From contig NC_092374.1 in NCBI RefSeq assembly GCF_030028105.1, positions 9,042,998-9,106,997 of the forward strand: a stretch of DNA of 64,000 nt. Direction: 5' to 3'. Source of the stretch: Mobula birostris. Its lineage: Eukaryota. Every line of letters starts with the position of its first letter. The first letter of the stretch is position 1. The position numbers and the translations under genes are program-made. Shown here piece after piece: positions 23,471-51,574 of this stretch. The notes beneath the pieces are model-generated. The model was not told where the DNA came from. It was given only the letters and a program-made list of their open reading frames with translations, and did no database searches.

Positions 23471-23542
23471 GTTCCCGTCAGCACAGATGCTGTGTTGATT
23501 CTGGTGTAGCGAGTGGTGTGAAATCACGAACTGCAGAGCCAG
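23471..23542 (+). CDS. Exon 5: juxtamembrane cytoplasmic exon GSRQHRCCVDSGVASGVKSRTAEP
   Basis: Acceptor ctctgtgtctttgacag, donor gtaatg, 72 nt, phase 1-1. Splice sites are conserved in the paralog at 4172. Confidence 0.8.
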
Positions 23543-24019
23543 GTAATGGGGCAGGGTCGGGGGTGGGGGGGGCGGTTGGGAGGAACTTGCCGAAGCTCCC
23601 TCTTCACATTGAGGACATTCCTGAAACGCAGGGCTGACTGAGCTGGCCTGGTGCCTTCTCTGGCTCCAGACTTCCTTCCCCTATCCTGTCACACCCACTA
23701 AATATCTATGCAGCTTGTGTGTTTGTGGGGTGGCAAGGTAGTTTAATGCTATTACAGCATTAACGTCCCGGTCTGAAAGGAGTTTCATGTTCTCCCCATG
23801 ACCATGTGGGTTTCCTCCAAGTGCTGCAGTTTCCTCCCACAATCCGTGCGGGTTGGTGGGTTAATTGGTCACATTGGTGTAACTGGGCAGCGTGGGGTCT
23901 GTTACCATGCTGTACCCCTCTTAAGTAAAAGCATTGAAGGCCTGGCCTACTCAATATCTCATAAACCAGTCTGTGAGTCAGAATCAGGTTTATAGTCAAT
24001 GACAGGTTTATAATCAAGG

Positions 24020-24315
24020 TCTACACTACAAGAGCAGGGATGTGATGCTGAGGCTTTATAAGGCACTGGTGAGGCCCCATCTTGAGCATTGTGAACAGTT
24101 TTGGGCCCCTTGTCTTAGAAAAGATGTGCTGGCATTGGAGAGGGTCCAGAGGAGGTTCACAAGGATGATTCCAGGGATGAAAGGGTTATCATACGAGAAA
24201 CGTTTGATGCATCTGGGTCTGTACTCGCTGGAATTCAGAAGGATGAGAGGGGATCTCATTGAAACCTTTCGAATATTGAAAGGCCTAGACAGAGTAGATC
24301 TGGAAAGGATGTTTC
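24020..24315 (+). mobile_element. CR1 3' region, left half (continues at 30269-30590 after nested insertions)
   Basis: MLRLYKALVRPHLEHCEQFWAPCLRKDV...DRVDLERMF. It resumes as tgtttcccgtggtgtgagagtccaggacaagaggg at about 30269 and ends in a cttatggt tail. Confidence 0.85.
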
Positions 24316-26728
24316 AAGATTCAAGATTGAAGATTCAAAAAACTTTATTATCATTCTAACCATACATCAGCTCTGCAGGGCAGAATGAGACAGCGTTTCT
24401 CAGGAGCAGTGCAATCCTAACATAACAAACGCAGCACTAAATAATAAACATAACAATAAATAGTAAAACACAACAGCCACATGTCAGTTAAAATCAGTTA
24501 TAAGTGTCTAGTGCAAGTTAAAAGTGTCCAAAGCAGAGTCAGGTAGAGCAGCTATTTAGCAGTCTGACTGCCTGTGGGAGGAAGCTGTTTAGTAGCCTTG
24601 TGGTTTTAGTTTTGATGCTCCTGTAACGTTTGCCTGATGGCAGAAGAGCCAACAGTTCATGGAGAGGGTGTGAGGGATCTTTGATGATGTACCGTGTCTT
24701 CTGGATTGATCGACTCTGAAAGAGGTCTTGGGCAGAAGGTAGGGAGACCCCAATAACCTTCTCTGCTCCCCTAACCACCCTTCTGCAAGGCTTTTTTGTC
24801 GACAGCACTGCAGCTGGAGTACCAGGTTGTGATGCAAAAGGTCAGCACACTCTCAACCATGCCTCTGTAGAATGTAGTTAAGATGTTAGTGGGGAGTGAT
24901 GCTTTTTTAAGCTTCCTCAGAAAGTGCAATCTCTGCTGGGCCCGTTTCACAATCCCAGTGGTGTTCCTGGACCAGGTGAGATTGTCCGAGATCTGCACCA
25001 CAAGGAACTTAATGTTTTCCACTCTCCACTGTGGAGCCGCTGATGCTGAGGGGTGTGTGCTCAGGCTGAGACCGTCTGAAATCGACGATCATCTCCTTGG
25101 TTTTGGTGACTTTAAGCATCAAGTTATTATCCCTGCACCAGCTCTCTAGGTGTTTGACCTCCCCCCGTACATAGTTTCATCATTTTTGCTGATGAGCCCC
25201 CCTACTGTGGCATCGTCTGCAAATTTAATGATCAGGTTCCCCTCCTTGAATCTGGCTGCACAGTCATGTGTTAGCAGTGTAAACAGCAGTGGGCTAAGCA
25301 CACAGCCTTGTGGGGATCCAGTGCTCAGTGTGATGGAGTCAGAGATGTTCCTGCCAACATGGACTGACTGTGGTCTCTCTGTCAAGAAATCCAGAATCCA
25401 GCTGCACATGGTAGTGCTAAGGCTAAGCAGCGACAGTTTCTCCACTAGTCTCTGCGGGATGATGGTATTGAACGCTGAACTGAAATCAATGTACAGGATT
25501 CTGGCATAGGTGTCTTTGTTGTCCAAGTGAGAGAGAACTGTGTGCAGTGTGGTGGATATTGCGTCCTCTGTAGAGCGATTTGGACGATAAGCAAACTGTA
25601 GAAGATCCAGTGATGAGGGGAGGCTGGCTGTGATATGAGGCTTGACAAGCCGTTCAAAACATTTCGTCACTATGGGGGTCAGGGCAACGGGACGGTAATC
25701 ATTCAGACAGACTACACCTGATTTCTTTGCTACAGGGTTGATTGTGGAGGTTTTGAAGCATCTGGGGACAATGGCTTGACTAAGGGAGAGGTTGAAAATG
25801 TCTGTCAGGACACCTGCTAATACATCAGCACATTCCTTGAGCACACGTCCAGGGATGTTGTTGGAACCTCCGGCTTTTCGTGGGTTGACCCTGGCAAGGG
25901 TCCTCCGTGTTTGCTCTGGATCAATGATTGGAGCCGGCTTGTCAGATGGTGGAAAGGGACTGGCTCTCCCCCTTGCTGTAGTGTTTGATGCTTCGAAGCG
26001 GGCAAAGAAATTGTTAAGCCTGTCTGGTAGAGAGGTGTTGCTGTCATTAGTTTTCTGCCTGATCTTGTAGTCTGTCAGAGCTTTAATTCCCTGCCACATC
26101 CGTCTGGTGTCACCTGTGTCACAGAAGTGTCCATGTATTTTGCCCGCGTAGGCCCTTTTCACTTTCCTGATCCCTAGTGAAAGTGCAGACCTGGCTGAGC
26201 GAAGCGCACTCCTGTCCCCCGATCTGCAGGCTGTGTCACGGGCCTTCAGTAGTGAACGCACCTCTGTTGTCATCCATGGCTTTTTATAACCACGTGCAGT
26301 GAAGGTTTTCATCACAGTGACATCCTCCGTGCATTTGGCTATGTAGCTGATTACTGCCCCCGCATACTCCTCAATGTCTGTATGATCACCCTAGGAGGCT
26401 GCTGTTTTGAATATGTCCCAGTCTGTGTGCAAAAAAGTCTTGTAGTGCTGAGGCTGCTCCTTTTGGCCAGACCCTTATCTCTCTTTTCTCTACTCTCACA
26501 CGTTTAAGCAGTGGTTTATATGCTGGTGTTAGCATGACAGATATGTGGTCAGAGTGGCCAAGATGGGGGCGGGGAGCTGCTTTGTATGCCTGTGGTGTGT
26601 TGGTATAAACCAAGTCCAGTGTGCTGTCTCCCCTGGTTTTGAAATCCACATATTGCCAGAATTTGGGGAACACAGTCTTTAAGCTGGTGTGGTTAAAGTC
26701 CCCAGCAATCACCACAAAGCTGTCAGGA
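24316..26728 (-). mobile_element. Rex1/Babar LINE, 5'-truncated (APE end + RT), few frameshifts
   Basis: HPDSFVVIAGDFNH, 389-aa RT ORF ([44 protein letters not shown]) and an (AATCTTG)n tail. Candidate TSD tgtttc at 24310-15 and 30269-74. Confidence 0.92.
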
Positions 26729-26976
26729 TGAAGCACCTTCAATTACTCCAAAAGACTGAGGTTTGGTTAAAATACTGAACGGCTTTTATTCGCTGTACAA
26801 TACGACCTCCACAGTGAGTGTCTGCCCCTGGACTGAGGGGGAGGGGCAAGGCGAACACCTTTATACAGGACTCTGTGGGAGGAGCCACAGGGGCAGTCAG
26901 CAGAGGTGTGTGTCCAGACAGGTAACCGAGTTACAACATATATACATGGTTTACCACATTCACCCCTCCTTTTTTT

Positions 26977-27642
26977 TTAAAAGAGTCCCGCAGGGTGAAG
27001 TGACTGACAATATTTACAAGAAGTATATTTACAGGTTAAGTCTATCAGGCGGTCGAGTCCGTCGCTGTGACCTCCGTAGCACCGGCGGTGATTGCACCCT
27101 GCGCAGACTTGGCAGTCCCTGGTCATCGTCCTGATCTCCTCAAGGGAGTAAGGCAGGTTCTGGGCTTTCACGAAGTGGAAAAGCCAGGTGACTCCCGGGT
27201 GGAAAAGGTCTACATGTAGGGCGTATAGCCGGTCGATCTGCGCGCTGGCACATGTTCCCCGGGATAGGGCATCAGAGGGCTCGTTGAGCTTCCCAGGCCT
27301 GTACATGATGTCATAGTTGTAGGTAGAGAGTTCGATTCTCCACCTCAGAATTTTATCATTTTTGATTTTGCTCCGCTGCTGATTATTAAACATGAACGCG
27401 ACTGAGCGCTGGTCAGTTAGCAGGGTGAACCTTTTGCCGGCAAGATAGTGCCTCCAGTGCCTTATAGCTTCCACTATGGCCTGGGCCTCTTTCTCTACCG
27501 CAGAGTGCCGAATTTCAGGGCCTTGAAGGGTACGGGAGAAGAACGCCACTGGTCTTCCTGCCTGGTTGAGTGTAGCAGCCAGCGCAAAGTCGGAGGCGTC
27601 ACTCTCTACTTGGAAGGGAATGGCCTCATCCTCCGCATGCAT
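26977..27642 (-). CDS. Gypsy RNase H + integrase N-terminal Zn finger (truncated)
   Basis: VESDASDFALAATL, EKEAQAIVEAIRHWRHYL, TDQRS, N(EPS)DALSR, H..HPG...CQVC. Confidence 0.85.
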   Translation of the reverse strand: MHAEDEAIPFQVESDASDFALAATLNQAGRPVAFFSRTLQGPEIRHSAVEKEAQAIVEAIRHWRHYLAGKRFTLLTDQRSVAFMFNNQQRSKIKNDKILRWRIELSTYNYDIMYRPGKLNEPSDALSRGTCASAQIDRLYALHVDLFHPGVTWLFHFVKAQNLPYSLEEIRTMTRDCQVCAGCNHRRCYGGHSDGLDRLIDLTCKYTSCKYCQSLHPAGLF

Positions 27643-27899
27643 TGTTGCTTTGGCAATGTCCCGTTTTATGCGGTTGAAGGCCGTGTGGGCCTCGGCAGAG
27701 AGGGGGAATGTGGTGGACTTGACCGGGGGCGGGCCTTGTCTGCATAGTTAGAGACCCATTGGGCGTAATATGAAAAGAAGCCCAGGCACCTTTTGAGGGC
27801 TCTGAGGGTATTGGGAAGAGGGAGTTCCAACAGGGGGCGCATACAGTCGGGGTCAGGGCCAATGACTCCATTCTCCACGACACACTCAAGGATAGCAAG

Positions 27900-28643
27900 T
27901 CAGGTGGTCCCAAATGCACACTTGTCCTTGTTATAGGTGAGGTTGAAAGATTTGGCCACTTGGAGAAATTTTTGGAGGTTGTTGTCGTGATCCTGCTGGT
28001 CGTGACCGCAGATGGTGATGTTATCCAGATATGGGAACATGGCCTTCAGTTGGCACTGGTCCACCATCTGGTCCATTGCCCTCTGGAAGACAGATACGCC
28101 ATTCGTGACACCAAAGGGGACGCGCAGGAATTGATAAAGCCTGTCGTCCGCCTCGAAGGCAGTGTAAGGGCGGTCCTCCCGGCGGATGGGGAGCTGATGG
28201 TAAGCGGATTTTAGGTCTATGGTCGAGTACACCTTGTACTGTGCTATCTGATTGACCATATCCGCGATGTGGGGTAGAGGGTACGCGTCGAGCTGTGTGA
28301 ACTTATTGATGGTCTGGCTATAGTTCACGACCATCCTATTCTTCTCCCTGTTCCGAACAACGACCACCTGCGCCCTCCAAGGACTTGTGCTTGCCTCAAT
28401 GACCCCCTCCCTGAGCAGCCGCTGCACCTCCGACGTAATGAAAGCTCTGTCCCCCGCGCTGTACCTCCTGCTTTTAGTTGCCACGGGTTTACAGTTGGGG
28501 GTCAGGTTGGTGAACAGCGGTGGGGGAGGGATCCTGAGGGTGGAGAGGCTGCAAGTGGTGTCGGTAGTGTGGCAGTTGGCATGATGTTGGGTGGGATGTG
28601 TGGGTCGGTGTGTGTGTGTGGTCAGTAGCGGGGTACGTGACAT
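27900..28643 (-). CDS. Gypsy reverse transcriptase (frameshifted relative to flanks)
   Basis: SPWRAQVVVV, YSTIDLKSAYHQL, VPFGVTNG, YLDNI. Confidence 0.9.
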   Translation of the reverse strand: MSRTPLLTTHTHRPTHPTQHHANCHTTDTTCSLSTLRIPPPPLFTNLTPNCKPVATKSRRYSAGDRAFITSEVQRLLREGVIEASTSPWRAQVVVVRNREKNRMVVNYSQTINKFTQLDAYPLPHIADMVNQIAQYKVYSTIDLKSAYHQLPIRREDRPYTAFEADDRLYQFLRVPFGVTNGVSVFQRAMDQMVDQCQLKAMFPYLDNITICGHDQQDHDNNLQKFLQVAKSFNLTYNKDKCAFGTT

Positions 28644-28788
28644 ATCTCTACAAAACGGGATTTATGACAGTAATTGGCGGGAGAGGCCCATCATACTTCA
28701 TTGTCACGCTTTTCAGGTGGCTCTGGAAGTCCAACCCCAACAGCACAGGGGCACATAGTTGAGGCAAGACCAGTAACTTAAAGTCCCG

Positions 28789-30006
28789 CTATTCTGTGCC
28801 CTGCACCACTAGCGTCGCTACACAACCCCCCCGGATGTCTGTTGTATGCGACCCGGAGGCCATGGTGACCCTCTGACTTACCAGCCGTATCATGAGTCCA
28901 CAATGCTGCACCGTGGCCGGGTGGATAAAACTCTCCGTGCTGCCTGTGTCAAACAGGCAGCTTGTCCTGTGCCCCTCCAACAGGATGTCCATCATTGACC
29001 TTGCGAGCTGGTGGGGAGCGCTTTGGCCAAGGGTCACGGAAGCCAGGGTGGGGTCGCTGTCTTGGTCCGGCGCGGTGGGGTGGCCCATGAGCACCCGTTG
29101 GTCGTAGGCGGTGGGAGGTGGCGCCGACCAAGATGGCTGCCCCCATGTCTCGCACGTGGTGGCAGTGTGCAGGCAAGATGGCGGCCCCCATGTCTCGCAC
29201 GTGGTGGCAGTGTGCAGGGAAGATGGCGACCCCCACGTCTCGCACGCGGCGCTGCTAGATCCCGCTTGCGGTTTTGACTTACAGACCTTGGCGAAGTGGC
29301 CCCTCTTTCCGCAGCTGGAACAGGTAGCTTGTCGGGCCGCGCAGCGTTTCCGGGGGTGCTTCTCCAGTCCGCAGAAGTAGCACTTCGCGGACTCACAACT
29401 GGCTGCAGCTGAGGTCGATTCGCCGGCGGGTTGCGGGGTCTGCGGCGCCCACGAGGCCATCGGGGGATCGCGTGCCTGGAGAGCCTCGGAGTTATGCAGA
29501 GCGGCCTCCAACGTATCAGCCAGCTCGATCGCCGAACTTAGGGTAAGATTGGCTTTTCCCAGCAGCCGCTGGCGCGCATACACGGACCTGGTCCCCGTGA
29601 CGAAGGCGTCTCTCACTAGGAGTTCTGCATGCTGCGCCGCCGTCAGCTCCTGGCAATTGTAGACCCGCACGAGTGTCTGTAGGGCCCGGACAAACTCAGC
29701 ACTCGATTCCCCGGACCGTTGTTGCCGTGTCGCTAAGCGATGCCGAGCATAGAAGCTGTTTATCGGCCGCAGGTATTGTCTTTTGAGTGCGTTCATCGCG
29801 CCGTCGCAGTTCGGCTGGTCTCTGATCAGCAAATAAACCCGTGGACTGACCCTGGAGAGTAGAACTCTGTGCTTTGCTACGGGGTCGGTCGCTTTAATCT
29901 CCTCTAGATACGCTTCGAAGCAGGCCAGCCAGAGTTCGAAAGCATTTCCAGCTTCGGGTGTTTGCGGATCAAGATCTAATTTGTCTGGTCTCAGAGCCTG
30001 TTCCAT
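28789..30006 (-). CDS. Gypsy Gag + aspartic protease (405 aa)
   Basis: Double Cys/His knuckle CYFCGLEKHPRKRC...CSSCGKRGHFAKVC and protease motif LFDTGS. Confidence 0.9.
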   Translation of the reverse strand: MEQALRPDKLDLDPQTPEAGNAFELWLACFEAYLEEIKATDPVAKHRVLLSRVSPRVYLLIRDQPNCDGAMNALKRQYLRPINSFYARHRLATRQQRSGESSAEFVRALQTLVRVYNCQELTAAQHAELLVRDAFVTGTRSVYARQRLLGKANLTLSSAIELADTLEAALHNSEALQARDPPMASWAPQTPQPAGESTSAAASCESAKCYFCGLEKHPRKRCAARQATCSSCGKRGHFAKVCKSKPQAGSSSAACETWGSPSSLHTATTCETWGPPSCLHTATTCETWGQPSWSAPPPTAYDQRVLMGHPTAPDQDSDPTLASVTLGQSAPHQLARSMMDILLEGHRTSCLFDTGSTESFIHPATVQHCGLMIRLVSQRVTMASGSHTTDIRGGCVATLVVQGTE

Positions 30007-31229
30007 GTTTCAAAATGTACAGCGAATAAAATTGAAGCACCTTCAATTACTCCAAAAGACTGAGGTTTGGTAAAATACTGAAAGGCTTTTATTCGCTGTA
30101 CAATACGACCTCCACAGTGAGTGTCTGCCCCCAGACTGAGGGGGAGGGGCAAGGCGAACACCTTTATACAGGACTCTGTGGGAGGAGCCACAGGGGCAGT
30201 CAGCAGAGGTGTGTGTCCAGACAGGTAACCGAGTTACAACATATATACATGGTTTACCACACAGGATGTGTTTCCCGTGGTGTGAGAGTCCAGGACAAGA
30301 GGGACAGCCTCAGGGTAGAGGGGTGCCCTTTCAAAACAGAGATGTGGAGAAATTTTTTCAGCCAGAGGGTGGTGAATCTGTGGAATTTGTTGCCACGTGC
30401 AGCTGTGGAGGCCAGGTCGCTGGGTGTGTTTAAGGCAGAGATTGATAGGTTCTTGATTGGTTATGGGGAGAAGGTCGGGAAGTGGGGTCAAGGAGAAGAT
30501 TTTAAAAAAAGGGTCACCCATGATTGAATGATTGAGCAGACTCGATGGGCCTTATGGCCAAATTCTGCTCCTGTGTCTTATGGTCTTTTGGTCTTATTGT
30601 CAAACAGTACATCATGAAATTGTTTTTGTGGCAGGACAGTATATTACACAGAAAAGTTACAATAAGAAAAAGGAAAATAAATAAGTAGTACTTATCACAA
30701 ATCTTGGTTACGGGATCACTGACGCCAGGCAGACAACCTCTGAAGAGGATTGATAATGGCTGTGGTCACCTGTTCTGTAAAGACACTCCCCAGTAGAAAA
30801 CAATGGCTTCTGTAGAAAAAATTTGCTCAGTACAATCATGGTCATGGAAAAACCATGTCATACAACACAACACGTGATGAATGAATGCTACTCATCAAAG
30901 TGCTATATAAAGACACACGAGATTCTGCAGATACTGGAAATCCAGAGTAGCACACACAAATGCTGGAGAAACTCAGCAGGTCAGGAGTCCTGACAAAGGG
31001 TCTCAGGCCAAAGTGTTGCCTGTTTATTCCTCCCCATAGGTGCTTCCTGACCTGCTGAAAATTTAAGGACACTAAGTTACACCTTCTTACTTTTATGTTG
31101 CTTCTTGTCCTCTTCTTGGCCACCACAGCACAATCTCAGCACAAGTGTAGAGTTGGTACCTTCTGGATCAGAAAGAGCACGTCCAACTTTCAATTGTTTT
31201 CCTGCAAGTTCAGACTTCATTTATTATCA

Positions 31230-32750
31230 CAGTACATCTATATTACCATGTGCTCCCTTGACATGTTCTCACAGGCATTTATCGGGGAAAAAATTCAAAG
31301 TTCAAAGTGAATTTATAATTAGAGTATGTATATATTACCCTGAGATTCATTTTTTTCTGGCCATCACAGTGAGAAACAATAGAATCGGTAAGATCAATGA
31401 AAAACGACGCACAAAGACCAACAACCATTACACCAAAAGAAAACAAACTGTGCAAATAGAAAAATAAATAAATAAATAATATTGAGAATAAGAACTGCAG
31501 TATCATTGAAAGTGAGTTTATAGGTTATGAAATCAGTGGAATCAAAGTTCAAAGTAAATTATTAAATGTATTATTGAAGTACATATATAGCCCTGAGATT
31601 AATTTTCTTGTGGCCGTACTCAATAAATCTATAGAATAATGACCATAACCGAATTAAAGACTGTCCAACTTGGCATTCAACCAGTGTGCAGAAGACAACA
31701 AACTGTGCAATTACAAACATAAATAAATAATAATAATAAATAAATAAGCAATAAGAATGGAGAACATGAGATGAAGAGTCCTCGAAAGTGAGTCCACAGG
31801 TTGTGGGAACAGTTTAATGATGGGGCAAATGAAGTTGAGTGAAGTTATCCCCAGTTTCAGGGGTAGTAACTCTACCTGAGCCCAGTGGTGTGGGTCGTGA
31901 TGCTCCTATACTTTCTTACTGTTGGCAGCAGCGAGAAGAGAGCATGTCCTGGGTGGTGGGGGCAATAAGAAATGCAACAGAATTTTACAGAAAAATTACA
32001 TGTAGTCTGACAAACAACCAGTGTGCAAATGGAGACGACCTGTGCAAATATAATTAATACTGAGAGCATGAGTTACAAAGAATACTTGGAAGTTTGTAGA
32101 GGTCGTGAATGAGGTGAATCGGTTGCTATTGATTGCAAGGAATGCACTTCCTGACCTGAATCTTCCTTCGTCTCCGATGGGAGTAGAATTAGAATCAGAA
32201 TCAGGTTTAATATCACCAGCATATGCTGTAAAATTTGTTAACTTAACAGCAGCCATACAGTGCGATACATGATAATATAGAAAAAAGGTATAGCGATTGC
32301 AGTAAGTCTATATATATATAAAACTATATTAATATATAGCTATATTAAAAACAGTGCAAAAACAGAAATAATACAAAAAAAGGTGAGGTATTGTTCATAG
32401 GTTCAATGTCCTTCCAGGAATCAGATGGCAGAGCGGAAGAAGCTGTTACTGAGTGTGTGACTCAGGCTTCTGTACCTCCTTCGCAATGGCAACAGTGCGA
32501 AGAGGACTTGTCCTGGGTGATGGGGGTCCTTAATAATGGACGGCGACTTTCTGAGGCACCGCTCCTTAAAGATGTCTTGGATACTACGGAGGCTAGTACC
32601 CAAGATGGAGCTGACTAATTTTACAACTTTCTGTAGCTTCATTTGATCCTGTGCATTAGTCCCCACACCCCAGAGAGTGATGCAGCCTGTCAAAATTGCC
32701 TCCACGGTACATCTGTAGAAGTCTTCAAGTGTTTTAGGTGACAAGCAGAA
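31230..32750 (-). mobile_element. Cluster of Rex1-type 3' fragments/tails
   Basis: Repeated tails (ttcaaagt.../agaatcagaatcagg...) and ORF FYRCTVEAILTGCITLWG...KDPHHPG...RRRYRSL. Confidence 0.75.
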
Positions 32751-32943
32751 TATCTGCAGAAGATGTTGTCTGCAGATATAACAATGATAACACCTCGCGT
32801 AGGGGCTTGGCTAGGGTAGCGCTGGAAAACTTTTGCAGTCATTACTCCAGGATTCACCCCACACCCGATTACTACAGGACAGGAATGGGGCTGGACAGTT
32901 TCTCCATTAAAATCCCCGTCTGATATCTTTGTGCCTTTGACAG

Positions 32944-33033
32944 ATTTGCAGCTTGAAAGTGACCCTATTTACAGCATTGTCAATTCAACAGCAGAGGCTA
33001 CTCCCCAGGTGGCTCCCGCTACAGGACAGAACG
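32944..33033 (+). CDS. Exon 6: cytoplasmic DLQLESDPIYSIVNSTAEATPQVAPATGQN
   Basis: Acceptor ctttgtgcctttgacag, GTGAGT donor, 90 nt, phase 1-1, Tyr motif IYSIV. Confidence 0.82.
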
Positions 33034-33548
33034 GTGAGTGCAATGACCATGATCATCCATATTATCATGCAGAAGGATTTCCGAGAGGGAGAGATTCGGG
33101 GAGGGTATTCCATATAATCCTGTAGTTGGCATGCACGGCCACCACAGAATAGTTGAAATAGGGGAAAGCATGTTGGGGAAGGTGGAGATCTCAGGGTTAT
33201 TGAACTGGGCCAGGTGACAGACAAAAGGGAAGGAAGAGTTTCCATAACGCGTGGAAACAGAAATGTGGGAGAAGTGCAGGACCAGACATTTGGTCCACAC
33301 TAACAATACAGTAATACCATTTTAAACTGCACATGTCAGCATCCCTCCATTCTCTGCCTCTCTAAACGCCCCTTAAATGTTGGCAAGACACCACTTCCCA
33401 TGGCTCTGCTCTTCAGGTAATATGTTCCTGTGTCAAAACAAAAATCTTGTCTCATAGCAGTCCTTTAAACATTCTCCCTTTCATCTTAAAGCTATGTTCT
33501 CTGGTATTTGGCCTTTCTGTCCTGAGTAAAAGACAAGAGTATCGAGAG

Positions 33549-35893: not shown

Positions 35894-36965
35894 TTTTTAA
35901 ATCTTTTTATTAATTTTCAAAATTATAAACTCAGTAACAATGTTGGTACCAAGAGATTAGAATAATCTTAATCAGCATATACAAAAAGGATTTAAGTAAT
36001 ATAGATATAAAAGACTTCCAAACTCATAATGAAATTAATCATTAAAAAAAGAAATAAAAAGAAAAGATATATATAAACAAAAAAAATCCCCAAAAGAAAA
36101 AGAAAAAAAAAACCCTAAAAAAAGAACAAAACAGGGCTAGACCAGTATCTTGTATCAGACATGTTCAGTAATGTCGTCAACTCCGCTGCTCTAATCACAT
36201 AATCTAAGTTTGAAAAAAAGATTCCGAAAGGCCAGATTACATCATATGAAAATGTTGCATAAAAGGTTTCCAAGTTCCTTCAAATTTAACCGAAGGATCA
36301 AAAATATCACTTCTAATTTTTTCTAAATTTAAACATAATATAGTTTGAGAAAACCATTGGAATGTAGTTGGAGGATTGATTTCTTTCCAGTTCAACAAAA
36401 TAGATCTTCTCGCCATTAAAGTAACAAATGCTGTCATCTGACATGCTGAAGAAGACAAAGATCTATGTTCTACCATTGGCAATCCAAAAATTGCCGTAAT
36501 AGGATGGGGTTTTAAATCGAAGCATAGAACTGTTGAAATAATATCAAAAATATCTTTCCAATACTTTTCCAAAAGAGGACAAAACCAAAACATATGAGTT
36601 AAAGAAGCTACTTCAGAGAGATATCTATCACAAGTAGGGTCCTAAATAAGTAAAATAGTCAGTAGTCACTCTAGTCACTTTAACCAATTTCCTCCGGGAT
36701 CAATAAAGTATGACTATGACTATGAAAAAAAAGTGGAGAATTTCTATAAGTAGGAACCTGCATATTTAATAGAAAGAGTTCACTGTTACCTAGGTTCAAT
36801 TTATAACCAGAAAAACTACCAAACTGAGCAAGCAAAGTTAATACTGCCGGAATAGATTTCCCTGGGTTAGAAAAATATAATAGTAGATCATCCACATATA
36901 GTGATAATTTATGAGTCTCATTTCCACGGATAATGCCAAATATGTTAGGGGAGTCACGAATGATC
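35894..36965 (-). mobile_element. L1-clade fragment (same family as 43375-46362) inserted in the HERO element
   Basis: Reverse complement of the 3' part of the + copy, with an A-rich tail at left. 10-bp TSD ctgtcttctc at 35884-93 and 36966-75. Confidence 0.88.
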
Positions 36966-41062: not shown

Positions 41063-41506
41063 GTTTATGGACGTACGATCAATCTATGAATATAAGCTAT
41101 TTTATATTCTTCATCCTAAATAAGAGAAAATCTGCAGATGCTGGAAATCTGAGCAACACACACAAAACGCTGGAGGAACTCAGCAGGCCAGGCAACATCT
41201 ATGGAAAAAAGTACAGTCGACGTTTCGGGCTGAAACTCTTCAGCAGGACATAGACCCTTTGGCAGACCCTACTGTCCTGCCAATGGGTCTTGGACCAAAA
41301 TGTCGACTGTGCTCTTTTCTATAGATGCTGCCTGACCTGCTGAGTTCCTCCAGCATTTTGTGTGTGTTGCTCCTTCATCCTATGTGGTTTTTTATGCTGT
41401 TTCAGATCTGGAGTAACAATTATTTCATTCTTCTTTACATTTGTGAACTGGAAATGACATTAAACAATCTTGAATCTTAAGTAATAACTGTCTATGCCCT
41501 TTCTAG

Positions 41507-41578
41507 ATCCTCAGGAGTCTCTAAACCAGCAGCTCTACAGCAATGCTAACTTTCAAACAGATTCCCAGACGAAGATGG
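41507..41578 (+). CDS. Exon 7: cytoplasmic DPQESLNQQLYSNANFQTDSQTKM
   Basis: Acceptor ctatgccctttctag, GTAAGC donor, 72 nt, phase 1-1. Homologous to exon 9 (DP..S....LYS...F.....TK.). Confidence 0.82.
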
Positions 41579-41789
41579 GTAAGCAACGGTGAACATACGG
41601 TAGGCGGTAAATCATTGGCCAAATTCCTTCCAAGGATTCTTGCCTCCATGACTTTTCCGTCAGCTTGTTCTGTAGTGTATCCACAGTTGAGCTGAGGTTA
41701 TGGAATGGAGAGTGGGATAGTAGAGGGGGATGGAGGGTTCTTGGAGCACAGAGAGAGGGTGCTTGGGATAGGGTGAGGGCAGTGTCTGT

Positions 41790-42425
41790 CATAGATTTAG
41801 ATTAGATTTGATTATGAGGACACGCAGTCCTCTTTTATTGTCATTTAGTAATGCATGCATTAAGAAATGATACAATATTCCTCCGGTGTGATATCACAGA
41901 AAACACAGGACAGACCAAGACTGAAAAACTAACAAAAACCACATAATTATAACATATAGTTACAACAGTGCAACAATACCATAACTTGATGAAGAACAGG
42001 CCATGAGCACAGTAAAAAAGTTCAAAGTCTCTCGAAAGTCCCACATCTCATGCAGACGGGAGAAGGAAGAAAACTCTCCCTGCCATGCCTGACCACAGTC
42101 CAACTCGGAGTCGTCCGAAAACTTCGAGCTCTGATCAGCCCTCCGACACTGAGTACCGAGCACCATCTCTGCCCAATGCTTTGACCTCAGCCTCGGTCGC
42201 CAACAGCAGGCAAAGCCGGGGATTTTGGAGCCTTCCCTCCGGAGATTCTCGATCGCACAGTAGCAGCGGCAGCGAACCAGGCATTTCAGAAATTTCTCCA
42301 GATGTTCCTCTGCTCCTCACGTCTGTCTCCATCAAATCAGAATTGTGCTCGGCATCCTACTTACAAATACAATATCATTTCACCAGAGATCTGCGTGAGC
42401 TGCGTCGTGTCGCCATCTTCTCCTC
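41790..42425. mobile_element. Unclassified interspersed repeat (inverted partial copy at about 56990-57305)
   Basis: tgaggacacgcagtcctcttttattgtcatttagtaatgcatgcatt... is the reverse complement of 57240-57300. Confidence 0.65.
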
Positions 42426-43131
42426 CTGCCCAAGAGAAGCAGGGGATAGGGAGCAATCAGAGGGGAGGTGCTGTCCGGACTGCCGATGGGGGGGGGGAGC
42501 GGACATTGGTGTCAGGGTGCAATCAAAAGAGGTGGGGAGCCTGTCAGCAGGCAATAGGGGTTACTGTATCAGAAAGAGAGGGACTGTCATGGCAACTGCT
42601 GGGTGGAATCAGAGTTTTCGGGAAGGTTTGAAGCATCAGAAGTACAGGGTATTAGAGGGGGATGGTGGGGTTGACAGGACAGGATTTAAGAGGGCTTTCC
42701 ATACGACTGTGAGATATAGGATCAGAATTTGGACATCCAGCCCATTGAGTCTGTTCCACTATTCAATCATGGCTGATTTATTATCCCCCTCAACTCCATT
42801 CTCCTGCCTTCTTCCTGTAACCTTTGATTCCCTTACTAGTCAAGAACCTACCAACATCCAAAGTTGGTCAGCATACTTCAAGTGTGGTCTGACCAATGCC
42901 TTATAAAGCCTCAGAATTACATTCTTGCTTTTATATTCCAATCCTCTCAAAATGAATGCTAACATTGAATTTGCCTTCCAGAAATGCGTGGCATTGCGTG
43001 ACAGGGCACATTCCGTTACATGGCGGGAGACACGAGGCTTCAGAGCAAGGGAATAACAGGCTAGGAGCTGGGGTTGTGGGATCCGTGTAGTGAGAGGGTG
43101 AGAAAGTTCATCGACTCTGCATCCTTTCCAG

Positions 43132-43209
43132 ATCCCCAGGAGGATCCCCATCTGCCTGTTTACAGCATCGTGCAGATTCGAAAACATTCCGAAGCAGGGC
43201 AGCGGAAAG
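43132..43209 (+). CDS. Exon 8: cytoplasmic DPQEDPHLPVYSIVQIRKHSEAGQRK
   Basis: Acceptor ctctgcatcctttccag, GTAAGG donor, 78 nt, phase 1-1. PVYSIV repeats PIYSIV of exon 6. Confidence 0.85.
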
Positions 43210-43374
43210 GTAAGGCGTGTGAAACAGTGGGAGCAGTGAAACACCATTGTCAAAATCAGGTTTATTTTCATTGTCTGTCAAAAAAATGTGTTGTTTTGTG
43301 GCAGCAGTGCAGTGCAATGCATAAAAAAGTTACAATAAGAAACAACAGATTCTTAAGATTCGTAAATAGGATGG

Positions 43375-46362
43375 CACTTTGACGGTTGACCATGACGAGA
43401 TTAATAAATCCTTTCAAGAATTTTATACCTCCTTATATCAATCAGAATTTCCTGATGACTCCACTATAATGCATGAATTTTTTAAGGAATTGAATATTCC
43501 AAAATTATCATCTAATGAACGTTCAAAACTAGACATACCTATTACAGTAGAGGAAATAAAGAATGCTTCTTTTTGATGAACTCAGGTAAAGCACCTGGCC
43601 CAGACGGATATACAGTAGAATTTTTAAAAAATGTTTCTCTACTACACTGACTCCTTGGCTATGTAGAGTTTTTAGGGATGCAGTATCTATAGGTAAATTA
43701 CCACAATCATTTTATTGAGCTTCTATTTCCCTAATTCTCAAAGAAGATAAGAATCCTACTGAATGTGCATCTTATAGGCCTATATCTTTGCTGAAAGTGG
43801 ATCCTAAGATTTTTTCTAAAATATTGGCAATGAGATTGGAGAATATATTACCTCAAATTATTTCTGCTGATCAGACTGGATTTATTAAAAATGGTTACTC
43901 TTCTTTTAATATTAGGAGATTAATGAATATTGTTTATACGCCTTCACCCAGAATTCCAGAATGTGTTATTTCATTGGACACTGAGAAAGCTTTTGACAGA
44001 GTTGAATGGACATATTTATTTAACACCCTTGAGAAATTTAATTTTAGTTCGATATTTATATCTTGGATTAAACTGATATATCTCACCCCTTTGGCTTTGG
44101 TATTTGCTAATAATCAAAGATCCCCTCTTTTTGAACCAATTTCCCCCGGGATTAATAAAGTATGACTATGACTATGACTATGACTATGACTATTTTTCAT
44201 CTATTCCGTGGTATTAGGCAGAATTGTCCTATTAGTCCACTACTATTTGATATTGCTTTGGAACCGCTAGCTATTGCTATTCGTGACTGCCCTAATATAT
44301 TTGGCATCAGCCGTGGAAATGAGACTCATAAATTATCACTATATGCAGATGATGCGCTATTATATATTTCTAAGCCAGGAAAATCTATTCCGGCAGTATT
44401 CCTGCTCAGTTTAGTAGATTTTCTGGTTATAAACTGAATCTAGGTAAGAGTGAACTTTTTCCATTAAATATGCAGGTTCCCATTTATAGAAATTCTCCAC
44501 TTAGAGTGACTACTGACTATTTTACTTATTTAGGAGTTAAAATTACTAAGAGACATATCTATTCAATTTCAACCTTTTACCGTTAATTAACCAGGTTAAA
44601 CAACTGATCACTAAGTGGTCCCCATTGTCTCTATCATTGATTGGCTGAATCAATGCTATTAAAATGATTATTTTACCTAAATTTTTATATTTATTTCAAG
44701 CGATATCAATTTTCATTCCTAAATCCTTTTTTGATACTATTGATTCTAAAATTTCCTCTTATATATGGCAAAAAATCCCAGATTAAGTAAAAAATATTTA
44801 CAGAAATCCAAGGAAGATGGAGGTTTGGCATTGCCTAACCTAAGATTTTATTATTGGGCAATTAATAGTCGATATTTAATATTTTGGACACAAGATTGGA
44901 ATATAACTCTAAGCCCACATTGAGTAAACCCTGAAGGGTTTTCGTTAGCTTCCATTTTAGAAACTTCACTTCCTTTTTACTATCTAAATTGAATAAACAA
45001 ATGCTTAACCCTATAGTTAAACATACATTGCGAATATGGTTTCAATTTCGTAAATTTTCTGGCCTGAATGAATTTACATTATCAAGTCCTATTATAGCTA
45101 ATTTCTTTTTTCAACCCTCGGTTATGGACCAAGCCTTTTTGATATGGAAAACGAAAGGTATAACATGTTTTCATGATTTATTTCTGGATAACTGTTTTAT
45201 GTCTTTTGAGCAGTTATCTAAGAAATTTGAATTGCCTAGATCCCATTTTTTTAGATACTTACAAATAAGAAATGTTTTAAATATTACATTGCCTACCTTT
45301 CCGACTTCAAATCCGACTGATATCATTGATAAAATTTTAGGTTTAAATCCTTTTCACAAGGGATTAATAGCAGTTATCTATGATATAATTATGAAATTAC
45401 AGCCAGGTATATCTGATAAAATTAAAAATGAATGGGAGAGGGAACTTCAACTTTGTCTACCTATAGAGAAATGGGATAAAATTTTTCAATTAGTTAGTAC
45501 TTCTTCTATATGTGCTAAACATACATTAATACAATTTAAAGTGGTGCATAGAGCCCATATGTCCAAAGATAAATTAGCCCATTTTTATTCCCATATAAAT
45601 CCTATTTGTGATAGATGTCACTCCTTTAACTCATATGTTTTGGTCCTGTCCTCTTTTGGAAAAATATTGGGAAGATATTTTTGATATTATCTCAATAGTT
45701 CTATGTTTTGATTTACAACCCCATTTTTGGATTGCCAATGGTAGAACATAGATCTCTGTCTTCTTCAGCCTGTCGGATGATAGCATTTGTTACTTTAATG
45801 GCCAGAAGAGCTATTTTATTGAACTGGAAGGAAACCAATCCTCCTACTACATCCCAATGGTTTTCTCAAACTATACTGTATTAAGTTTAAACTTAGAAAA
45901 AAATTAGAAGTGATATTTTTGATCCTTCGGTTAAATTTGAAGAAACTTGGAAACCTTTTATGTAACATTTTCATATGAGGTAATTTGACCTTTCTGAATC
46001 TTCTTTATTAACTTAAAATATACGAATAGAGGAGCGGAGTTGACGACATTACTGAACGTGTTCGATTCAAGATATTGGTCTAGCCCTGTGTTGTTCTGTT
46101 TGCTTTTTTTTTGGGTTTAGTATTCAGTTTTTTTTTCTTTTGGGGGTTTTTCTTTGTTTATATATATATTTTTCTTTTTATTTCTTTTTTCTCTTTATGA
46201 CTAATTTCATTATGAGCTTGGAAGTCTATTATGCCTATGTTACTTAAAATCTTTTTTGTATATGTTTATTAAGACTATTCCAATCTCTTTGTATCAACAT
46301 TGTTACTGTGTTTATAATTTTGAAAATTAATAAAAAGATTTAAAAAGAAATATAAAAAATAA
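43375..46362 (+). mobile_element. L1-clade LINE, 5'-truncated degenerate ORF2 + 3' UTR + A-rich tail
   Basis: KAPGPDGY, YRPISLL, QTGFIK, SLDTEKAFDRVEW, RQNCPISPLLF, SLYADD, FFRYLQIR, QFKVVHR, CDRC; aataaaaagatttaaaaag tail. Confidence 0.92.
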
Positions 46363-47694
46363 ATGTTGGGCAAAAAGAGGGCAAAATAGTGATGTAGAGT
46401 TCATGGACCATTCAGAAATCTGATGACAGGAGAAAGAAGCTGTTTCTAAATCACTGAGTGCACTGCAGTGCTTCCAAACTAGACAGTGATACTCTCCATG
46501 GTGCATTTGTAGAAACTTGCTAAAAGTCAAAGTTCAAAATAAATCTACTATCGAAGTACACATATGTCACCATATACAACCCTGAGACTCGTTTTCTTGC
46601 AGGCATACTCAATAACTCCTTAACAGAATTATAAAGCAACTTGGGTTTTCAACCGGTGTGCAAGACAACAAACTGTGCAAACACTAAATGAAAGAAATAT
46701 ATTGATAAGTAAATAAGCAGTAAATATCGAGAACATGAGGTTGTGGGAACATTTCAATCATGGGACAAGTTAAGTTGAATGAAGTTATCTCTTTCGGTTC
46801 AAGGGCCTGATGGTGGAGGGTTAATAACTGTTGGTATGAGTCCTGAGTCTCCTTTACCTTCTTCCTAGAGGCAGCAATGAGAAGAGAACATGACCTGGGT
46901 AATGGGGGACCATGATGATAGGTGCTGCTCTCCTGCAACAGTGCTGCATATAGATATACTCAGTGGCGGGGAGGGCTTTACCCATGATGAACTGCTACTG
47001 CTTATAGGATTTTCCATTCATTGGTAACATACCAAATCTCCTCAAAGTCCTAATGAAATATAGCTGCAGTACTGTGGGTATCTATTGGAGATTCATCTCT
47101 TCAGTTGGCTGAACAGCACACCCTTGGCATATTGTCCAGGAACAGCCACACACACTAACAGCACCCACTGGGCGTCCCACCAACCCCCACAATCCAGTGG
47201 CCTCAAGGGTTCAAGGTTGACTGAATATGTAGGCAAGGTTAAAGCCAGTAAAGCAGCTACGAGATCAGGACGTGGAGGCCAAAGATCTTGATGTATTTGA
47301 CCTTCCTCCCACCAGCAAGCAAACAAGGACCAGAGCTGGAAATGTAGCACTGAGGAAGAGGAGGTAAGCAGAATAGGGAAAATGGGTTGCTAGGTCAGGT
47401 GAGAGCTGCCAGTCTGGGAGGAATGAGCATGGGGGAGAGTGGACTGTCAATGGGGACTATCAGGGCTGGGGAAAGAAGTGTGAGATGCAGGACAGGAGGG
47501 GCTTTCAGGGTGGGGGAAAGGCACTTTCAGAACACAGTCTTCTGATGTAAGGGAGAATATTATAACAGAGGAAATATAAGAATGACTAGTCCACTTTGCC
47601 CTTTGAACCTGTTATACCTGTCTGCTGATATTCAACACAGACTGAACCTGGAATTTCCCACTATTGGAAACAGCCTCTCCACATCCACTGTATC

Positions 47695-48080
47695 TCATCA
47701 TCATATCAATGTGCTGTGTCGTATGACGTGGGCGATCAGGGTCTTTCACCATGATTGTTTTAGGCAAATTTTTCTACAGAAGCAGTTTGCCATTGGCTTC
47801 TTCTGGGCAGTGTCTTTACAAGACGGGTGACCCCAGCCATTATCAATACTCTTCAGAGATTGTCTGCCTGGTGTCAGTGGTCGCATAACCAGGACTTGTG
47901 ATATACACCGGCTGCTCATACGACCATCCACCACCTGCTCCCATGGTTCCAGGTGCCCCTGATCAGAGGGCTAAGCAGGTGCTACACCTTGTCCAAGGGT
48001 GACCTGCAGGCTAGCAGAAAAAAGGAGCACCTTACACCTCCTTTGGTAGAGACGTACCTCCACCCCACTGCCCACCATTC
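47695..48080 (-). mobile_element. Short interspersed repeat with (ATG)n-type tail; related copies at about 18720-18960 (+) and 30700-30900 (+)
   Basis: Shared ccaggcagacaatctctgaagagtattgataatggctggggtcacc...cttgtaaagacact core. Confidence 0.7.
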
Positions 48081-48583
48081 TAACTAGACTTTTCAATATT
48101 TAATATGTTTCAATGAGATTCCCTCCTCACTCAGTGAGTACAGACCTTTTGACTTTAATAATAAATAAATAATAATAATAAAAATAAAAAATATTAATAA
48201 ATCAGAGTCAAAAACCCAAAGTCAATTAAACCCTTTAATTCTCGGAATCATCCTCTCCTATGCCAGCACATCCTTTCTTAAATACGAAGTTCGAAACTGC
48301 TCACAATACCCTGTACTCCAAGTATAGTTTGGCCAATGCCTTATAAAGTCTCAGCATTACAGCCTTGCTTTTATAGAGCATAGAACAGCTTTTCATTTCA
48401 TGGTGCCTGTGCTGACCATGATGCCAACTTCAACTGATCACACCTGCCTACAGACAGCTTTCATCTTTGTTTCATTAGCTCCTAACAGGTCACCTCCCCC
48501 GAGGTAGAGACAGGGCAGTTTTAAGGAGGTAATGCAGTGGGGAGGAGATGAGGAAGAATTTTAACTATTTGTGTATTTTGCAG

Positions 48584-48655
48584 ATCCCCACGACTCTCCA
48601 AGTCATGGTCTTTACAGTAAAGTCCAATTTCCAATACCCAGACGCACGAAGACAG
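48584..48655 (+). CDS. Exon 9: cytoplasmic DPHDSPSHGLYSKVQFPIPRRTKT
   Basis: Acceptor tttgtgtattttgcag with tttaac branch, GTAAGG donor, 72 nt, phase 1-1. Confidence 0.85.
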
Positions 48656-49429
48656 GTAAGGAAATTAAAATGCGTAGTGAGTGGCAAACTACCAGTGGGC
48701 ATCCCCTGAGAGTTCCTGTTCCCATCTGGCAGGATTTCATACCAATCAAAGAAGCCACCCATGCTAAACACACTTTTGAATTCAATAAAGGAATTAGTAA
48801 AAAAAATATGAGAGTAATCTAGCGAAAAATGTCAAAAAAATGACAAGGGAAAAAACTTGCGAGGACCTGTGCGTCTCTGATATCAAAAACAATGGGAATA
48901 CGGGAGAGGACTGTAGTTTTTGATGCACCCTAGATCAAGGTCTCGTTGAGGGCTTTTGCTATTGTTTGCATGGTGAGAGGAGGGGTGGTTGTTCGTTACT
49001 TGCTGGTGCAAGTGGGGGGGGGGAGAGGGAAGGTCGATGCCTCTGTTGCTGCTTGCGCAACGGAAGAGGGAGGGGGACTTTGGGGTTCTGATATCTCTGT
49101 TATTCATTCTTTGGTTTGTTCTGTTTCGTGGACGTTTGCGAAGAGTAAGAATTTCAGGTTGTACAGTGCAATGCATAAAAATTGCTATGTTACAAAAGCA
49201 AATAGCGCAAAAGATGAAGGACAAGAATTTACTCGGAGGACCACATCATCAGATAGGTGATAGCATTAGAGCAACAGGCTGCCAAAGGACTGCAACTATA
49301 TTGTGCAATATGGCAAGTCAGTTTGCAGTGATAAACACATGGCTGATGTTCAACACCTTGGTTTAACTATACATTGCCCTAGGCTGGGCTAGATCTTTAC
49401 TTAAATATATTGCTGGGCGGCCACACTTT

Positions 49430-50585
49430 CTACTCATAAACTACTTAACGAGGTAAGAGCCCATGGAATTACGGGAAAGTTATATACATGGATAGAGTGT
49501 TGGCTGATTGGCAGGAAACAGAGAGTGGGAATAAAGGGATCCTATTCTGGTTGGCTGCCGGTTACCAGTGGTGTTCCACAGGGAGCCGTGTTGGGGCCGC
49601 TTCTTTTTAAATTGTACATCAACGATTTGGATTATAGAATAGATGGCTTTGTGGCTAAGTTTGTTGATGATACGAAGATAGGTGGAGGGGCCGGTAGTGC
49701 TGAGGAAATGGAGAGTCTGCAGAGAGACTTGGATAGATTGGAAGAATGGGCAAAGAAGTGGCAAATGAAATACAATGTTGGAAAGTGTATGGTTGGCAGA
49801 AGAAATAAACGGGCAGACTATTATTTAAATGGGGAGAGAATTCAAAGTTCTGAGATGCAACGGGACTTGGGAGTCCTCGTACAGGATACCCTTAAGGTTA
49901 ACCTCCAGGTTCAGTCGGTAGTGAAGAAGGCGAATGCAATGTTGGCATTCATTTCTAGAGGAATAGAGTATAGGAGCAGGGATGTGATGTTGAGGCTCTA
50001 TAAGGCGCTGGTGAGACCTCACTTGGAATACTGTGGGAAGTTTTGGTCTCCTTATTTAAGAAAGGATGTGCTGACGTTGGAGAGGGTACAGAGAAGATTC
50101 ACCAGAATGATTCCGGTAATGAGAGGGTTAACTTATGAGGAACGTTTGTCCGCTCTTGGAATGTATTCCTTGGAGGTTAGAAGAATGAGGGGAGACCTCA
50201 TAGAAACATTTTGAATGTTGAAAGGCATAAACAGAGTGGATGTGGCAAAGTTGTTTCCCATGATGGGGGAGTCTAGTACGAGAGGGCATGACTTAAGGAT
50301 TGAAGGGCACCCATTCAGAACAGAAATGCGAAGAAAATTTTTTAGTCAGAGGGTGGTGAATCTATGGAATTTGTTGCCACGGGCAGCAGTGGAGGCCAAG
50401 TCATTGGGTGTATTTAAGGCAGAGATTGATAGGTATCTGAGTAGCCAGGGCATCAAAGGTTATGGTGAGAAGGCGGGGGAGTGCGACTAAATGGGAGAAT
50501 GGATCAGCTCACGATAAAATGGCAGAGCAGACTCGATGGGCCAAATGGCCGACTTCTGCTCCTTTGTCTTATGGTCTTATGGTCT
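49430..50585 (+). mobile_element. CR1 RT/3' end, relatively well preserved
   Basis: 229-aa ORF (GVPQGAVLGPLLF, KFVDDTK, VRPHLEYC) followed in frame after one stop; (CTTATGGT)n tail. Confidence 0.92.
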
Positions 50586-50959
50586 AAACTGATCAGTTTA
50601 TGAGTAGTTCTCAGGAACAGAATCCTACCATAAACCAAGGAGACCTGCAGCAGCATCTCTCAATAACTACATTAAAATCCTAAAATGACTGTAATTCTGA
50701 GGCTTTGGTCAGATCACACTGGAGGTATTGTAAAACGCAAACACGGGAAATCAGCAGATGTGGGAATTTCAAGCAACACACATAAAAGTTGCTGGTGAAC
50801 GCAGCAGGCCAGGCAGCATCTCTAGGAAGAGGTACAGTTGACGTTTCAGGCCAAGACCCTTCGTCAGGACTAACTGAAAGAAGAGCTAGTAAGAGATTGG
50901 AAAGTGGGAGGGGGAGGGGGAGATCCAAAATGATAGGAGAAGACAGGAGGGGGAGTGAT

Positions 50960-51500
50960 CCCCTCCTGTGAGCAGTTTGTGAGCAGTTTTAGGCCCCTTA
51001 TCTCAGAAAGGACATGCTGGCATTGAAAAGGGCCCAGCGGAGGTTCACAAGAATGATCCCAGGAATGAAAGGGTTAATGTGTGAGGAGTGAGGAGATGGC
51101 TCTGGGCCTGTACTCACTGAAGTGGGGTGGGGGGGAATCTTATTGAAACCTATCAAATACTGAAAGGCCGAGATAGAGTAGACATGAAGAGGATGCTTCC
51201 ATTATTGGGAGAGTCTAGGACCAGAGGGCACAGCCTCAAAATACAAAGACATCACTTTAGGACAGAGATGAGGAGGAATTTCTTTCAGCCAGAGTGAATC
51301 TGTGGAACTCATTGCCACAGACTGCTGTGGAGGTCGTCACTTAAAGCAGAGGTTAACAGTTCTTGATTAGTAAGGAGGTCAATCCAGAAGGCAGGAAAAT
51401 GGGGTTGAGAGGGTTAATAAATCAGCCATGATGGAATGGCGGAGCGGACACGAGGGGCCAAATGCCCTGATTATGCTCTTATGTCTTATAGTCCTATGGT
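50960..51500 (+). mobile_element. CR1 3' fragment
   Basis: aggttcacaagaatgatcccaggaatgaaagggtta...atgtcttatagtcctatggt tail. Confidence 0.8.
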
Positions 51501-51527
51501 TTTAAAACAGAATTGTTTCTCTTTCAG

Positions 51528-51574
51528 CTGCAATTTATGCAACAGTTGCCCATCCTGATGAACAGTCTTCAGAC
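51528..51574 (+). CDS. Exon 10: cytoplasmic AAIYATVAHPDEQSSD (or read-through VSND* to 51589)
   Basis: Acceptor ttgtttctctttcag in phase 1, IYATV motif, GTAAGC donor in phase 0. If the donor is unused, the stop is TAA at 51587-89. Confidence 0.72.

Follow-up and report, generated by a model that had tools for sequence, protein, structure and literature searches.

Introduction

The cytoplasmic tail of PECAM-1 (CD31) is encoded by exons 9-16, with the tyrosines located on separate exons, and isoforms in which single exons are skipped in frame differ in signalling and adhesion (PMC2132561). We describe here a 64,000-nucleotide (nt) stretch of the Mobula birostris (giant manta ray) sequence NC_092374.1 (hereafter the window; all coordinates are window positions and refer to the + strand unless stated otherwise), which includes a gene for an immunoglobulin (Ig) receptor whose tail is also split over many very short exons with the tyrosines on separate exons. 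This likeness is an analogy of design only. The two key sites of PECAM-1 are true immunoreceptor tyrosine-based inhibitory motifs (ITIMs) and its tail exons are not known to be copies of one another, whereas the manta sites miss the ITIM rule and the manta exons appear to be paralogous copies of one 24-codon exon.

Among fish receptors of the Ig superfamily with long multi-tyrosine tails, a functional precedent is the catfish IpLITR 1.1b, whose six-tyrosine tail includes a Csk-type site (AVYAQV), a Grb2 YxN site, an ITIM and an immunoreceptor tyrosine-based switch motif (ITSM), and for which the binding of Csk and SHP has been shown experimentally (PMC4810170). It is set beside the manta receptor by description; the two differ in the family of their ectodomains, and the manta tail is without a strict ITIM. 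The XFL proteins of Xenopus form a large paired Ig receptor family that follows a phase-1 exon rule and encodes its long tails, which carry one to three YxxL/I/V motifs, on exons apart from the transmembrane exon; their ectodomains belong to yet another family than that of the manta receptor, and the portion of the report used here describes no repeated tail-exon array (PMC2413239). The primate paired Siglecs, Siglec-5/14 and Siglec-11/16, have near-identical ectodomains according to the portions of the reports used here (PMC5701461, PMC4042635), and in this respect they resemble the manta gene, the ectodomain of which is nearly identical to that of its neighbour.

We consider it probable that the exons described below encode the tail of the long-tailed partner, the one with the uncharged transmembrane helix, in a manta pair of Siglec-15-like receptors, and that four of them, with a fifth as a likely addition, are copies of a single exon. 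Our literature search found no paper on Siglec-15-like receptors of sharks or rays.

Results and Discussion

The long-tailed gene and its tail exons

Reading of the splicing from the sequence (a signal exon, two V exons and the rest) yielded a gene of 10 exons encoding a 530-residue protein (Table 1). Its cytoplasmic tail has 148 residues and is divided among six short exons located 3' of the transmembrane exon, named E5 to E10, and its transmembrane helix, ALALSVALSSLAIILLVVFVVWF, has zero charged residues. A whole-library search with the transmembrane exon as query retrieved XP_072113536.1, an uncharacterized 874-residue protein of Mobula birostris; exon 4 is identical to its residues 610-726, and its last 148 residues are exactly the predicted splice product of the tail exons.

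Exons E5 to E9 have acceptors consisting of a pyrimidine tract and AG, donors that read GTAAG, GTGAG or GTAAT, lengths that are all multiples of three, and G as the last base. They share a length class and an intron phase (72-90 nt, 1-1), as expected of a tandemly duplicated exon array. An earlier note on this DNA, made from the sequence alone, had proposed exons of 72, 90, 72, 78 and 72 nt, all in phase 1-1, of which four start with Asp and three with Asp-Pro; the limits and splice sites that we read agree with these values, and E6-E9 begin with AT, giving an Asp junction codon, while E7-E9 begin with Asp-Pro. Each of the five peptide motifs has a single occurrence, on the + strand and at the position claimed in that note, and the pattern [AVI]IYA[AT]V likewise occurs in the window only at E10. 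The description of one tyrosine motif per exon holds for E6-E10 and fails for E5, where there is no tyrosine. A Pfam search of the tail matched no family.

Table 1. Exons of the long-tailed manta gene, related manta features, and tail exons of the homologous Heptranchias perlo locus (L001). Manta positions are window positions; shark positions are those of the locus.
Feature	Positions	Strand	Length and phase	Remarks
Exon 1 (context)	5250..5298	+		Signal peptide MLFFLLSAIVLSVSAV
Exon 2 (context)	9992..10372	+		First V-set domain
Exon 3 (context)	13273..13635	+		Second V-set domain
Exon 4	19035..19388	+	354 nt, phase 1-1	C2/I-set Ig domain (Pfam) and uncharged transmembrane helix, ending ...WFLKK
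E5	23471..23542	+	72 nt, phase 1-1	Juxtamembrane unit GSRQHRCC...TAEP, without tyrosine
E6	32944..33033	+	90 nt, phase 1-1	PIYSIV unit
E7	41507..41578	+	72 nt, phase 1-1	LYSNA unit (YxN)
E8	43132..43209	+	78 nt, phase 1-1	PVYSIV unit
E9	48584..48655	+	72 nt, phase 1-1	LYSKV unit
E10	51528..51589	+		Terminal coding exon, AAIYATV...DVSND; stop TAA at 51587-51589
Candidate alternative last exon (unsupported)	58969..59106	+		EIYAEQ...KPEL, ending in a stop (59104-59106); use of the 51574 GTAAG donor would put it in frame
Neighbour's copy of exon 5	4172..4239	+	68 nt	Reads GFCQRGICVDSSVAMV, then stop; 1-nt and 3-nt deletions
Shark U1	12267-12338		72 nt, phase 1-1	Tail exon
Shark U2	20939-21010		72 nt, phase 1-1	Tail exon
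Shark U3	30064-30135		72 nt, phase 1-1	Tail exon
Shark U4	30627-30698		72 nt, phase 1-1	Tail exon
Shark U5			36 nt	Tail exon
Shark U6	36209-36280		72 nt, phase 1-1	Tail exon
Shark terminal exon	start 38984			IYAAV

Homology among the tail exons

The manta tail exons were compared in pairs as protein, with the alignments scored against 2000 shuffles, and as DNA, ungapped and in register over 72 nt, with 5000 codon shuffles and an expectation of about 21 identities. At the protein level the z-scores were 10.4 for E7-E9, 5.6 for E7-E8 and 4.3 for E8-E9; that of E6-E8 was 4.0, with an alignment that spans the hexapeptide only. The protein alignments of E5 and E10 with every other exon were not significant. 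The in-register DNA identities were 43/72 for E7-E9, 41/72 for E7-E8 and 36/72 for E8-E9 (50-60%), values that none of the 5000 shuffles reached. In E6 the tyrosine sits one codon earlier than in the other tail exons, and with a one-codon gap this exon has 35/72 identities to E7 (0/3000 shuffles), 32/72 to E8 (p = 0.012) and 31/72 to E9 (p = 0.007), so that the p values for its membership in the family range from <0.0004 to 0.012. The homology that the earlier note had noticed is thus borne out in formal alignment by shuffle tests on both protein and DNA. These results support the interpretation of E6-E9 as diverged paralogous copies of a putative ancestral exon of about 24 codons in phase 1-1, the form of which may have been Asp-Pro-x-Glu ... 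(V/L)-Tyr-Ser-x-Val.

Between the manta copies the flanking introns have no homology beyond about 10-20 bases at the splice sites, and because no intron homology is left we consider the copies old. By comparison, a duplication in the same window (1965-4327 versus 19911-23637) is still about 70-80% identical in non-coding DNA. A six-frame profile scan of the window found no hidden or decayed extra tail unit. Upstream of E8 and E9 the introns match over 62 nt; this was considered as a relic of duplication and rejected, since the match is a dispersed repeat with more copies near 24.0, 50.0 and 50.7 kb.

Tail exons in sharks

The search that retrieved the manta protein also gave two shark proteins with tails made of 24-residue units. 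That of Heptranchias perlo (sevengill shark), which includes isoforms named Siglec-12 by NCBI, has units like DPQEAGSVPVYSIITGTVSQQAET and DPQESESLILYSSVHVLRFHQTET and ends in AAIYAAV...; that of Heterodontus francisci, named CXADR-like by NCBI, has similar tail units and ends in DVIYATV.... The exons proposed in the earlier note are therefore conserved in relatives, as sharks keep the same 72-nt phase-1 tail exons: the Heptranchias locus has five of them, in phase 1-1, together with the 36-nt U5 and a terminal exon (Table 1). A profile made of the four manta units alone gave its five highest ranks, among the 1691 six-frame pieces of this locus, to the 72-nt shark exons. In the reverse direction, a profile made of shark units alone ranked E8 first (E 0.004), E7 second and E6 fourth among the 2659 six-frame pieces of the window, which takes the tail-exon pattern beyond chance.

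At the nucleotide level E7 and E9 each have 45/72 identities to shark U3, with in-register blastn matches of 109 nt including flanks (E 5e-14) and 126 nt (E 1e-13), respectively, that extend into the flanking introns. E6 has 71% identity to U2/U6 over 62 nt. The terminal exons of manta and shark are 74% identical over 77 nt, a stretch that includes the 22 intron bases in front of the AG, 19 of them shared as counted by eye. E5 has 36/72 identities in register to U1, the first tail exon of the shark, a value found in 0/5000 codon shuffles, and the blastn match is also in register. U1 has a His where the other units have the Tyr. Because of the match to the first shark tail exon, E5 is probably a decayed copy of the tail-exon family at the matching position. 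By these matches the tail-exon family is older than the shark-ray split. Since both motif types, PVYSI(V/I) and LYS, occur in sharks, both would also predate it.

Growth of the exon array

In the shark, homology among copies reaches into the flanking introns for U1, U2 and U6, which lie within duplicated blocks of 0.8-1.2 kb and 77-89% identity, one exon per block. U2 and U6 are identical in 72/72 nt and nearly so in their flanks within 100 nt. The blocks around these two exons are about 80% identical overall, which suggests either a duplication that is recent or gene conversion over a short tract with the exon at its centre. The same locus has at about 8900-8970 an extra, unannotated tail-exon copy (DPQEPGSVPVYNIITGTVSQQ...) that is truncated at its 3' end and has no donor site; the 638-nt block around it has 91% identity to that of U2.

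The earlier note had explained the order E6-E7-E8-E9 by one tandem duplication of a two-exon block composed of a PxYSIV exon and a LYS exon. The motif types do alternate, within the manta E7 matches E9 best and vice versa, and both have U3 as their best shark match, yet we regard this explanation as unlikely. E6 and E8, with 32/72 identities (gapped) versus 43/72 for E7-E9, are among the least similar pairs, fall below E6-E7 (35) and E7-E8 (41), and share little beyond P(I/V)YSIV; at the protein level each of them is closer to the shark PVYS units than to the other. The comparison of exons together with their flanking introns went against the two-exon unit as well, as the introns have no homology between the supposed blocks and the sole in-register match is the dispersed repeat mentioned above. 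In a maximum-likelihood tree of ten exons no fork was supported, and the duplications visible in the shark hold single exons. It is highly improbable that the exons are alike because they converged on a short tyrosine motif and on the same length, and not through common descent. Such motifs are short and recurrent across many receptors, and what E6 and E8 share outside the hexapeptide is little, but exons of the same length and phase are 50-60% identical in register from end to end, in codons outside the motif and in the splice-flanking bases too; moreover, the manta-to-shark matches run into introns, and duplication blocks that contain intron are seen directly in the shark.

Because E6 and E8 are unlike, the tree lacks a supported fork and the visible shark duplications carry one exon per block, we favour a turnover of the array in which exons are gained and lost one at a time, together with flanking intron, over the two-exon block. 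The mapping of both E7 and E9 to U3 fits a doubling of the U3 type, which could have taken place in the ray lineage or earlier with a later loss in sharks. In the sequence of events that we propose, a phase 1-1 exon of about 24 codons, already present before the shark-ray split, would have been copied to give E6-E9 and probably the tyrosine-less E5, E10 being a separate conserved (A/V)-Ile-Tyr-Ala-(Thr/Ala)-Val site, and after the split the array would have grown and shrunk through duplication and loss of single exons, flanking intron included.

The paired-receptor layout

The upstream neighbour of the long-tailed gene has 93% identity to it over 360 residues, covering the Ig domains and the transmembrane stretch. 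By eye, the differences between the paired genes are nearly all in the transmembrane helix, which carries an Arg in the neighbour and is uncharged in the long-tailed gene. The 1965-4327 versus 19911-23637 duplication covers the post-transmembrane stretch to about 100 bases past exon 5, where the homology ends. In the neighbour's copy of exon 5 (Table 1) both splice sites are kept, and a frameshift leads to a stop after 16 residues and hence to a short tail. This frameshifted copy looks like the way in which the neighbour acquired its short tail. As far as can be read from the DNA, the combination of a near-identical ectodomain with a charged helix and a truncated tail in the neighbour is the classic activating/inhibitory paired arrangement.

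The relatives of these genes are named Siglec-15 or Siglec-12 by NCBI. In mammals, Siglec-15 carries a lysine in the membrane and its tail is short; neither of these marks of a Siglec-15 orthologue is found in the long-tailed manta protein, which has instead an uncharged helix and a 148-residue tail. At the position of the sugar-binding Arg of Siglecs, both V domains have, by eye, a Gln or a His.

Tyrosine motifs and predicted signalling

Under the strict ITIM rule, (S/I/V/L)-x-Tyr-x-x-(I/V/L), none of the five tyrosine sites of the manta tail qualifies; the residue at position Y-2 is P, Q, P, G and A, as the earlier note had it, and its statement that none of them is a strict ITIM is correct. 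The consensus of the Csk SH2 domain is Y[T/A/S][K/R/Q/N][M/I/V/R] and that of Grb2 is YxN (PMC4810170), and the Csk site of Cbp/PAG is YSSV (PMC3492796). The resemblance to Csk sites that had been proposed for the manta motifs is complete for YSKV in E9, which fits the whole consensus, and partial for YSIV and YATV, which fit at +1 and +3 only. YSNA in E7 matches the Grb2 YxN consensus, as had also been proposed. YSKV and YSNA fit the role of predicted docking sites for the SH2 domains of Csk and Grb2, respectively.

At matching positions the shark homologues have the strict ITIMs ILYSSV and VIYATV and the ITSM TLYSTV. Because these shark sites are strict, the manta tyrosine sites resemble inhibitory motifs that have been relaxed. 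That the long tail inhibits or modulates is our best inference, and only that; as no manta tyrosine meets the ITIM or ITSM rule, the direction of the effect is drawn from the paired-receptor layout and the shark homologues. According to the mechanism that we propose, clustering of the receptor could lead Src-family kinases to phosphorylate the five tail tyrosines, upon which SH2 proteins would dock, Csk at YSKV and Grb2 at YSNA, while phosphatases of the SHP or SHIP type may dock weakly at YSIV and YATV. The net output would be damping or modulatory and would oppose that of the neighbour with the charged helix and truncated tail. Exon skipping could change the number and type of docking sites with the frame kept.

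The RefSeq model, the terminal exon and exon use

The RefSeq protein XP_072113536.1 is a wrong fusion of two adjacent genes. Its residues 1-360 are the upstream neighbour and its residues 361-874 (514 residues) are the long-tailed gene minus the signal peptide; the fusion path goes from the neighbour's transmembrane exon to the first V exon and skips the neighbour's exon-5 copy as well as the signal exon (5250-5298). At the 3' end the model has no splice at the 51574 GT and reads through to DVSND and the TAA stop, and in both shark homologues the C-terminus is 7-8 residues past the IYA(A/T)V motif. The exon end placed at 51574 in the earlier note is thus revised: the GTAAG lies inside E10, and the RefSeq model and both shark homologues end coding in the IYATV exon. 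The stretch 58969-59106, which has a TACTAAC branch point and an AG upstream and would contribute a sixth tyrosine, is unsupported as an alternative last exon, being absent from the RefSeq model and from the shark homologues.

Since every exon is symmetric, the skipping of any tail exon keeps the frame. The possibility of in-frame skipping raised in the earlier note is consistent with this, as any subset of E5-E9 can be removed with the frame kept and with Gly, Asp or Ala as the junction codon. In Heptranchias the annotated isoform X2 lacks exactly one 24-residue unit of isoform X1, that of exon U2, and is otherwise equal to it. As a rule, alternative isoforms are predicted by NCBI only where transcripts support them.

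Several observations weigh against our interpretation of the tail. All five manta tyrosines fall outside the strict ITIM and ITSM rules. The family membership of E5 and E6 is less well supported than that of E7-E9. XP_072113536.1, being mis-fused, is not a flawless witness for exon use. None of the sequencing runs found is on record as RNA, and they are probably DNA; the reads of four runs over 48500-54499 were swamped by transposon copies (49.1-51.5 and 52.1-52.7 kb), and among the joints shown on that region there was none from 48655 to 51528. Protein searches scored on the manta tail gave the manta protein alone, with no annotated ray orthologue having such a tail. A search scored on the shark tail gave, besides the query, two shark proteins only.

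These points bear on two further explanations. That the tail is an activating or endocytic scaffold, with recruitment of Grb2, PI3K or Syk-type proteins or with YxxV sorting signals, is somewhat unlikely in our judgement: it would agree with the lack of strict ITIMs and ITSMs in the manta and with the one YxN Grb2-type site, and the long multi-tyrosine tail of the catfish LITR 1.1b both inhibits and drives phagocytosis (PMC4810170), but a paired layout in which the neighbour has the charged transmembrane helix and the short tail, strict ITIM and ITSM sites at the matching shark positions, and the fit of YSKV to the consensus of Csk, which is an inhibitory route, all argue for inhibition or modulation. 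We find it quite unlikely that the mature manta mRNA lacks some of the exons, these being artefacts of prediction or pseudo-exons in decay, which would leave the real tail shorter. No run on record as RNA was found, the only manta model is a fused one and no close ray orthologue is annotated; against this, all the exons have open frames and strong splice sites, E6-E10 each keep one tyrosine, the exons are recovered by a profile made from sharks alone, the window is without extra decayed copies, and the same layout is kept in the shark homologues.

A tail of this kind represents no new principle, as a tail with tyrosines spread over many exons and with in-frame skipping is textbook knowledge from PECAM-1 (PMC2132561), and separate phase-1 exons for long tails are usual in paired Ig receptors, at least as these appear in the portion of the Xenopus report used here (PMC2413239). 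What is particular to this family is that the exons are, by the matches described above, demonstrably copies of one exon and that their turnover is visible between sharks and rays. It would be a clean, datable example of an immune-receptor signalling tail built by copying one small symmetric exon, from a lineage, that of sharks and rays, in which innate receptors are almost unstudied. Apart from this, the analysis separates two genes that RefSeq had fused and recognizes one of them as the long-tailed partner in a Siglec-15-like pair. As a tentative and rather doubtful extension, the tail could be considered an evolvable array of one 24-codon phase-1 tyrosine exon that cartilaginous fishes keep copying, losing and selectively splicing. 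If this were the case, the SH2 docking sites on one receptor could be adjusted in number and type by single exons, in evolution as well as by the cell, and a copy at a given position would be free to drift from one type to another among true ITIMs, Csk-type sites and Grb2-type sites.

Other features of the window

The window includes an internal duplication of a V exon and a C2 exon (13163-13817 versus 17849-18501, and 14072-14362 versus 19028-19318). The RefSeq model includes neither the second V copy (about 17997-18356) nor the first C2 copy (about 14072-14362); these extra copies look like pseudo-exons, with a stop before the V core and a frame shift in the C2 copy. Most introns of the long-tailed gene are packed with dispersed repeats. 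Intron 5 has on the minus strand, at about 24700-30000, long open frames of up to 414 residues, within a stretch of unusually high G+C content (up to 0.585), that look like a retroelement, and it also includes a 230-nt direct repeat of 98% identity (26729-26958 and 30033-30261).

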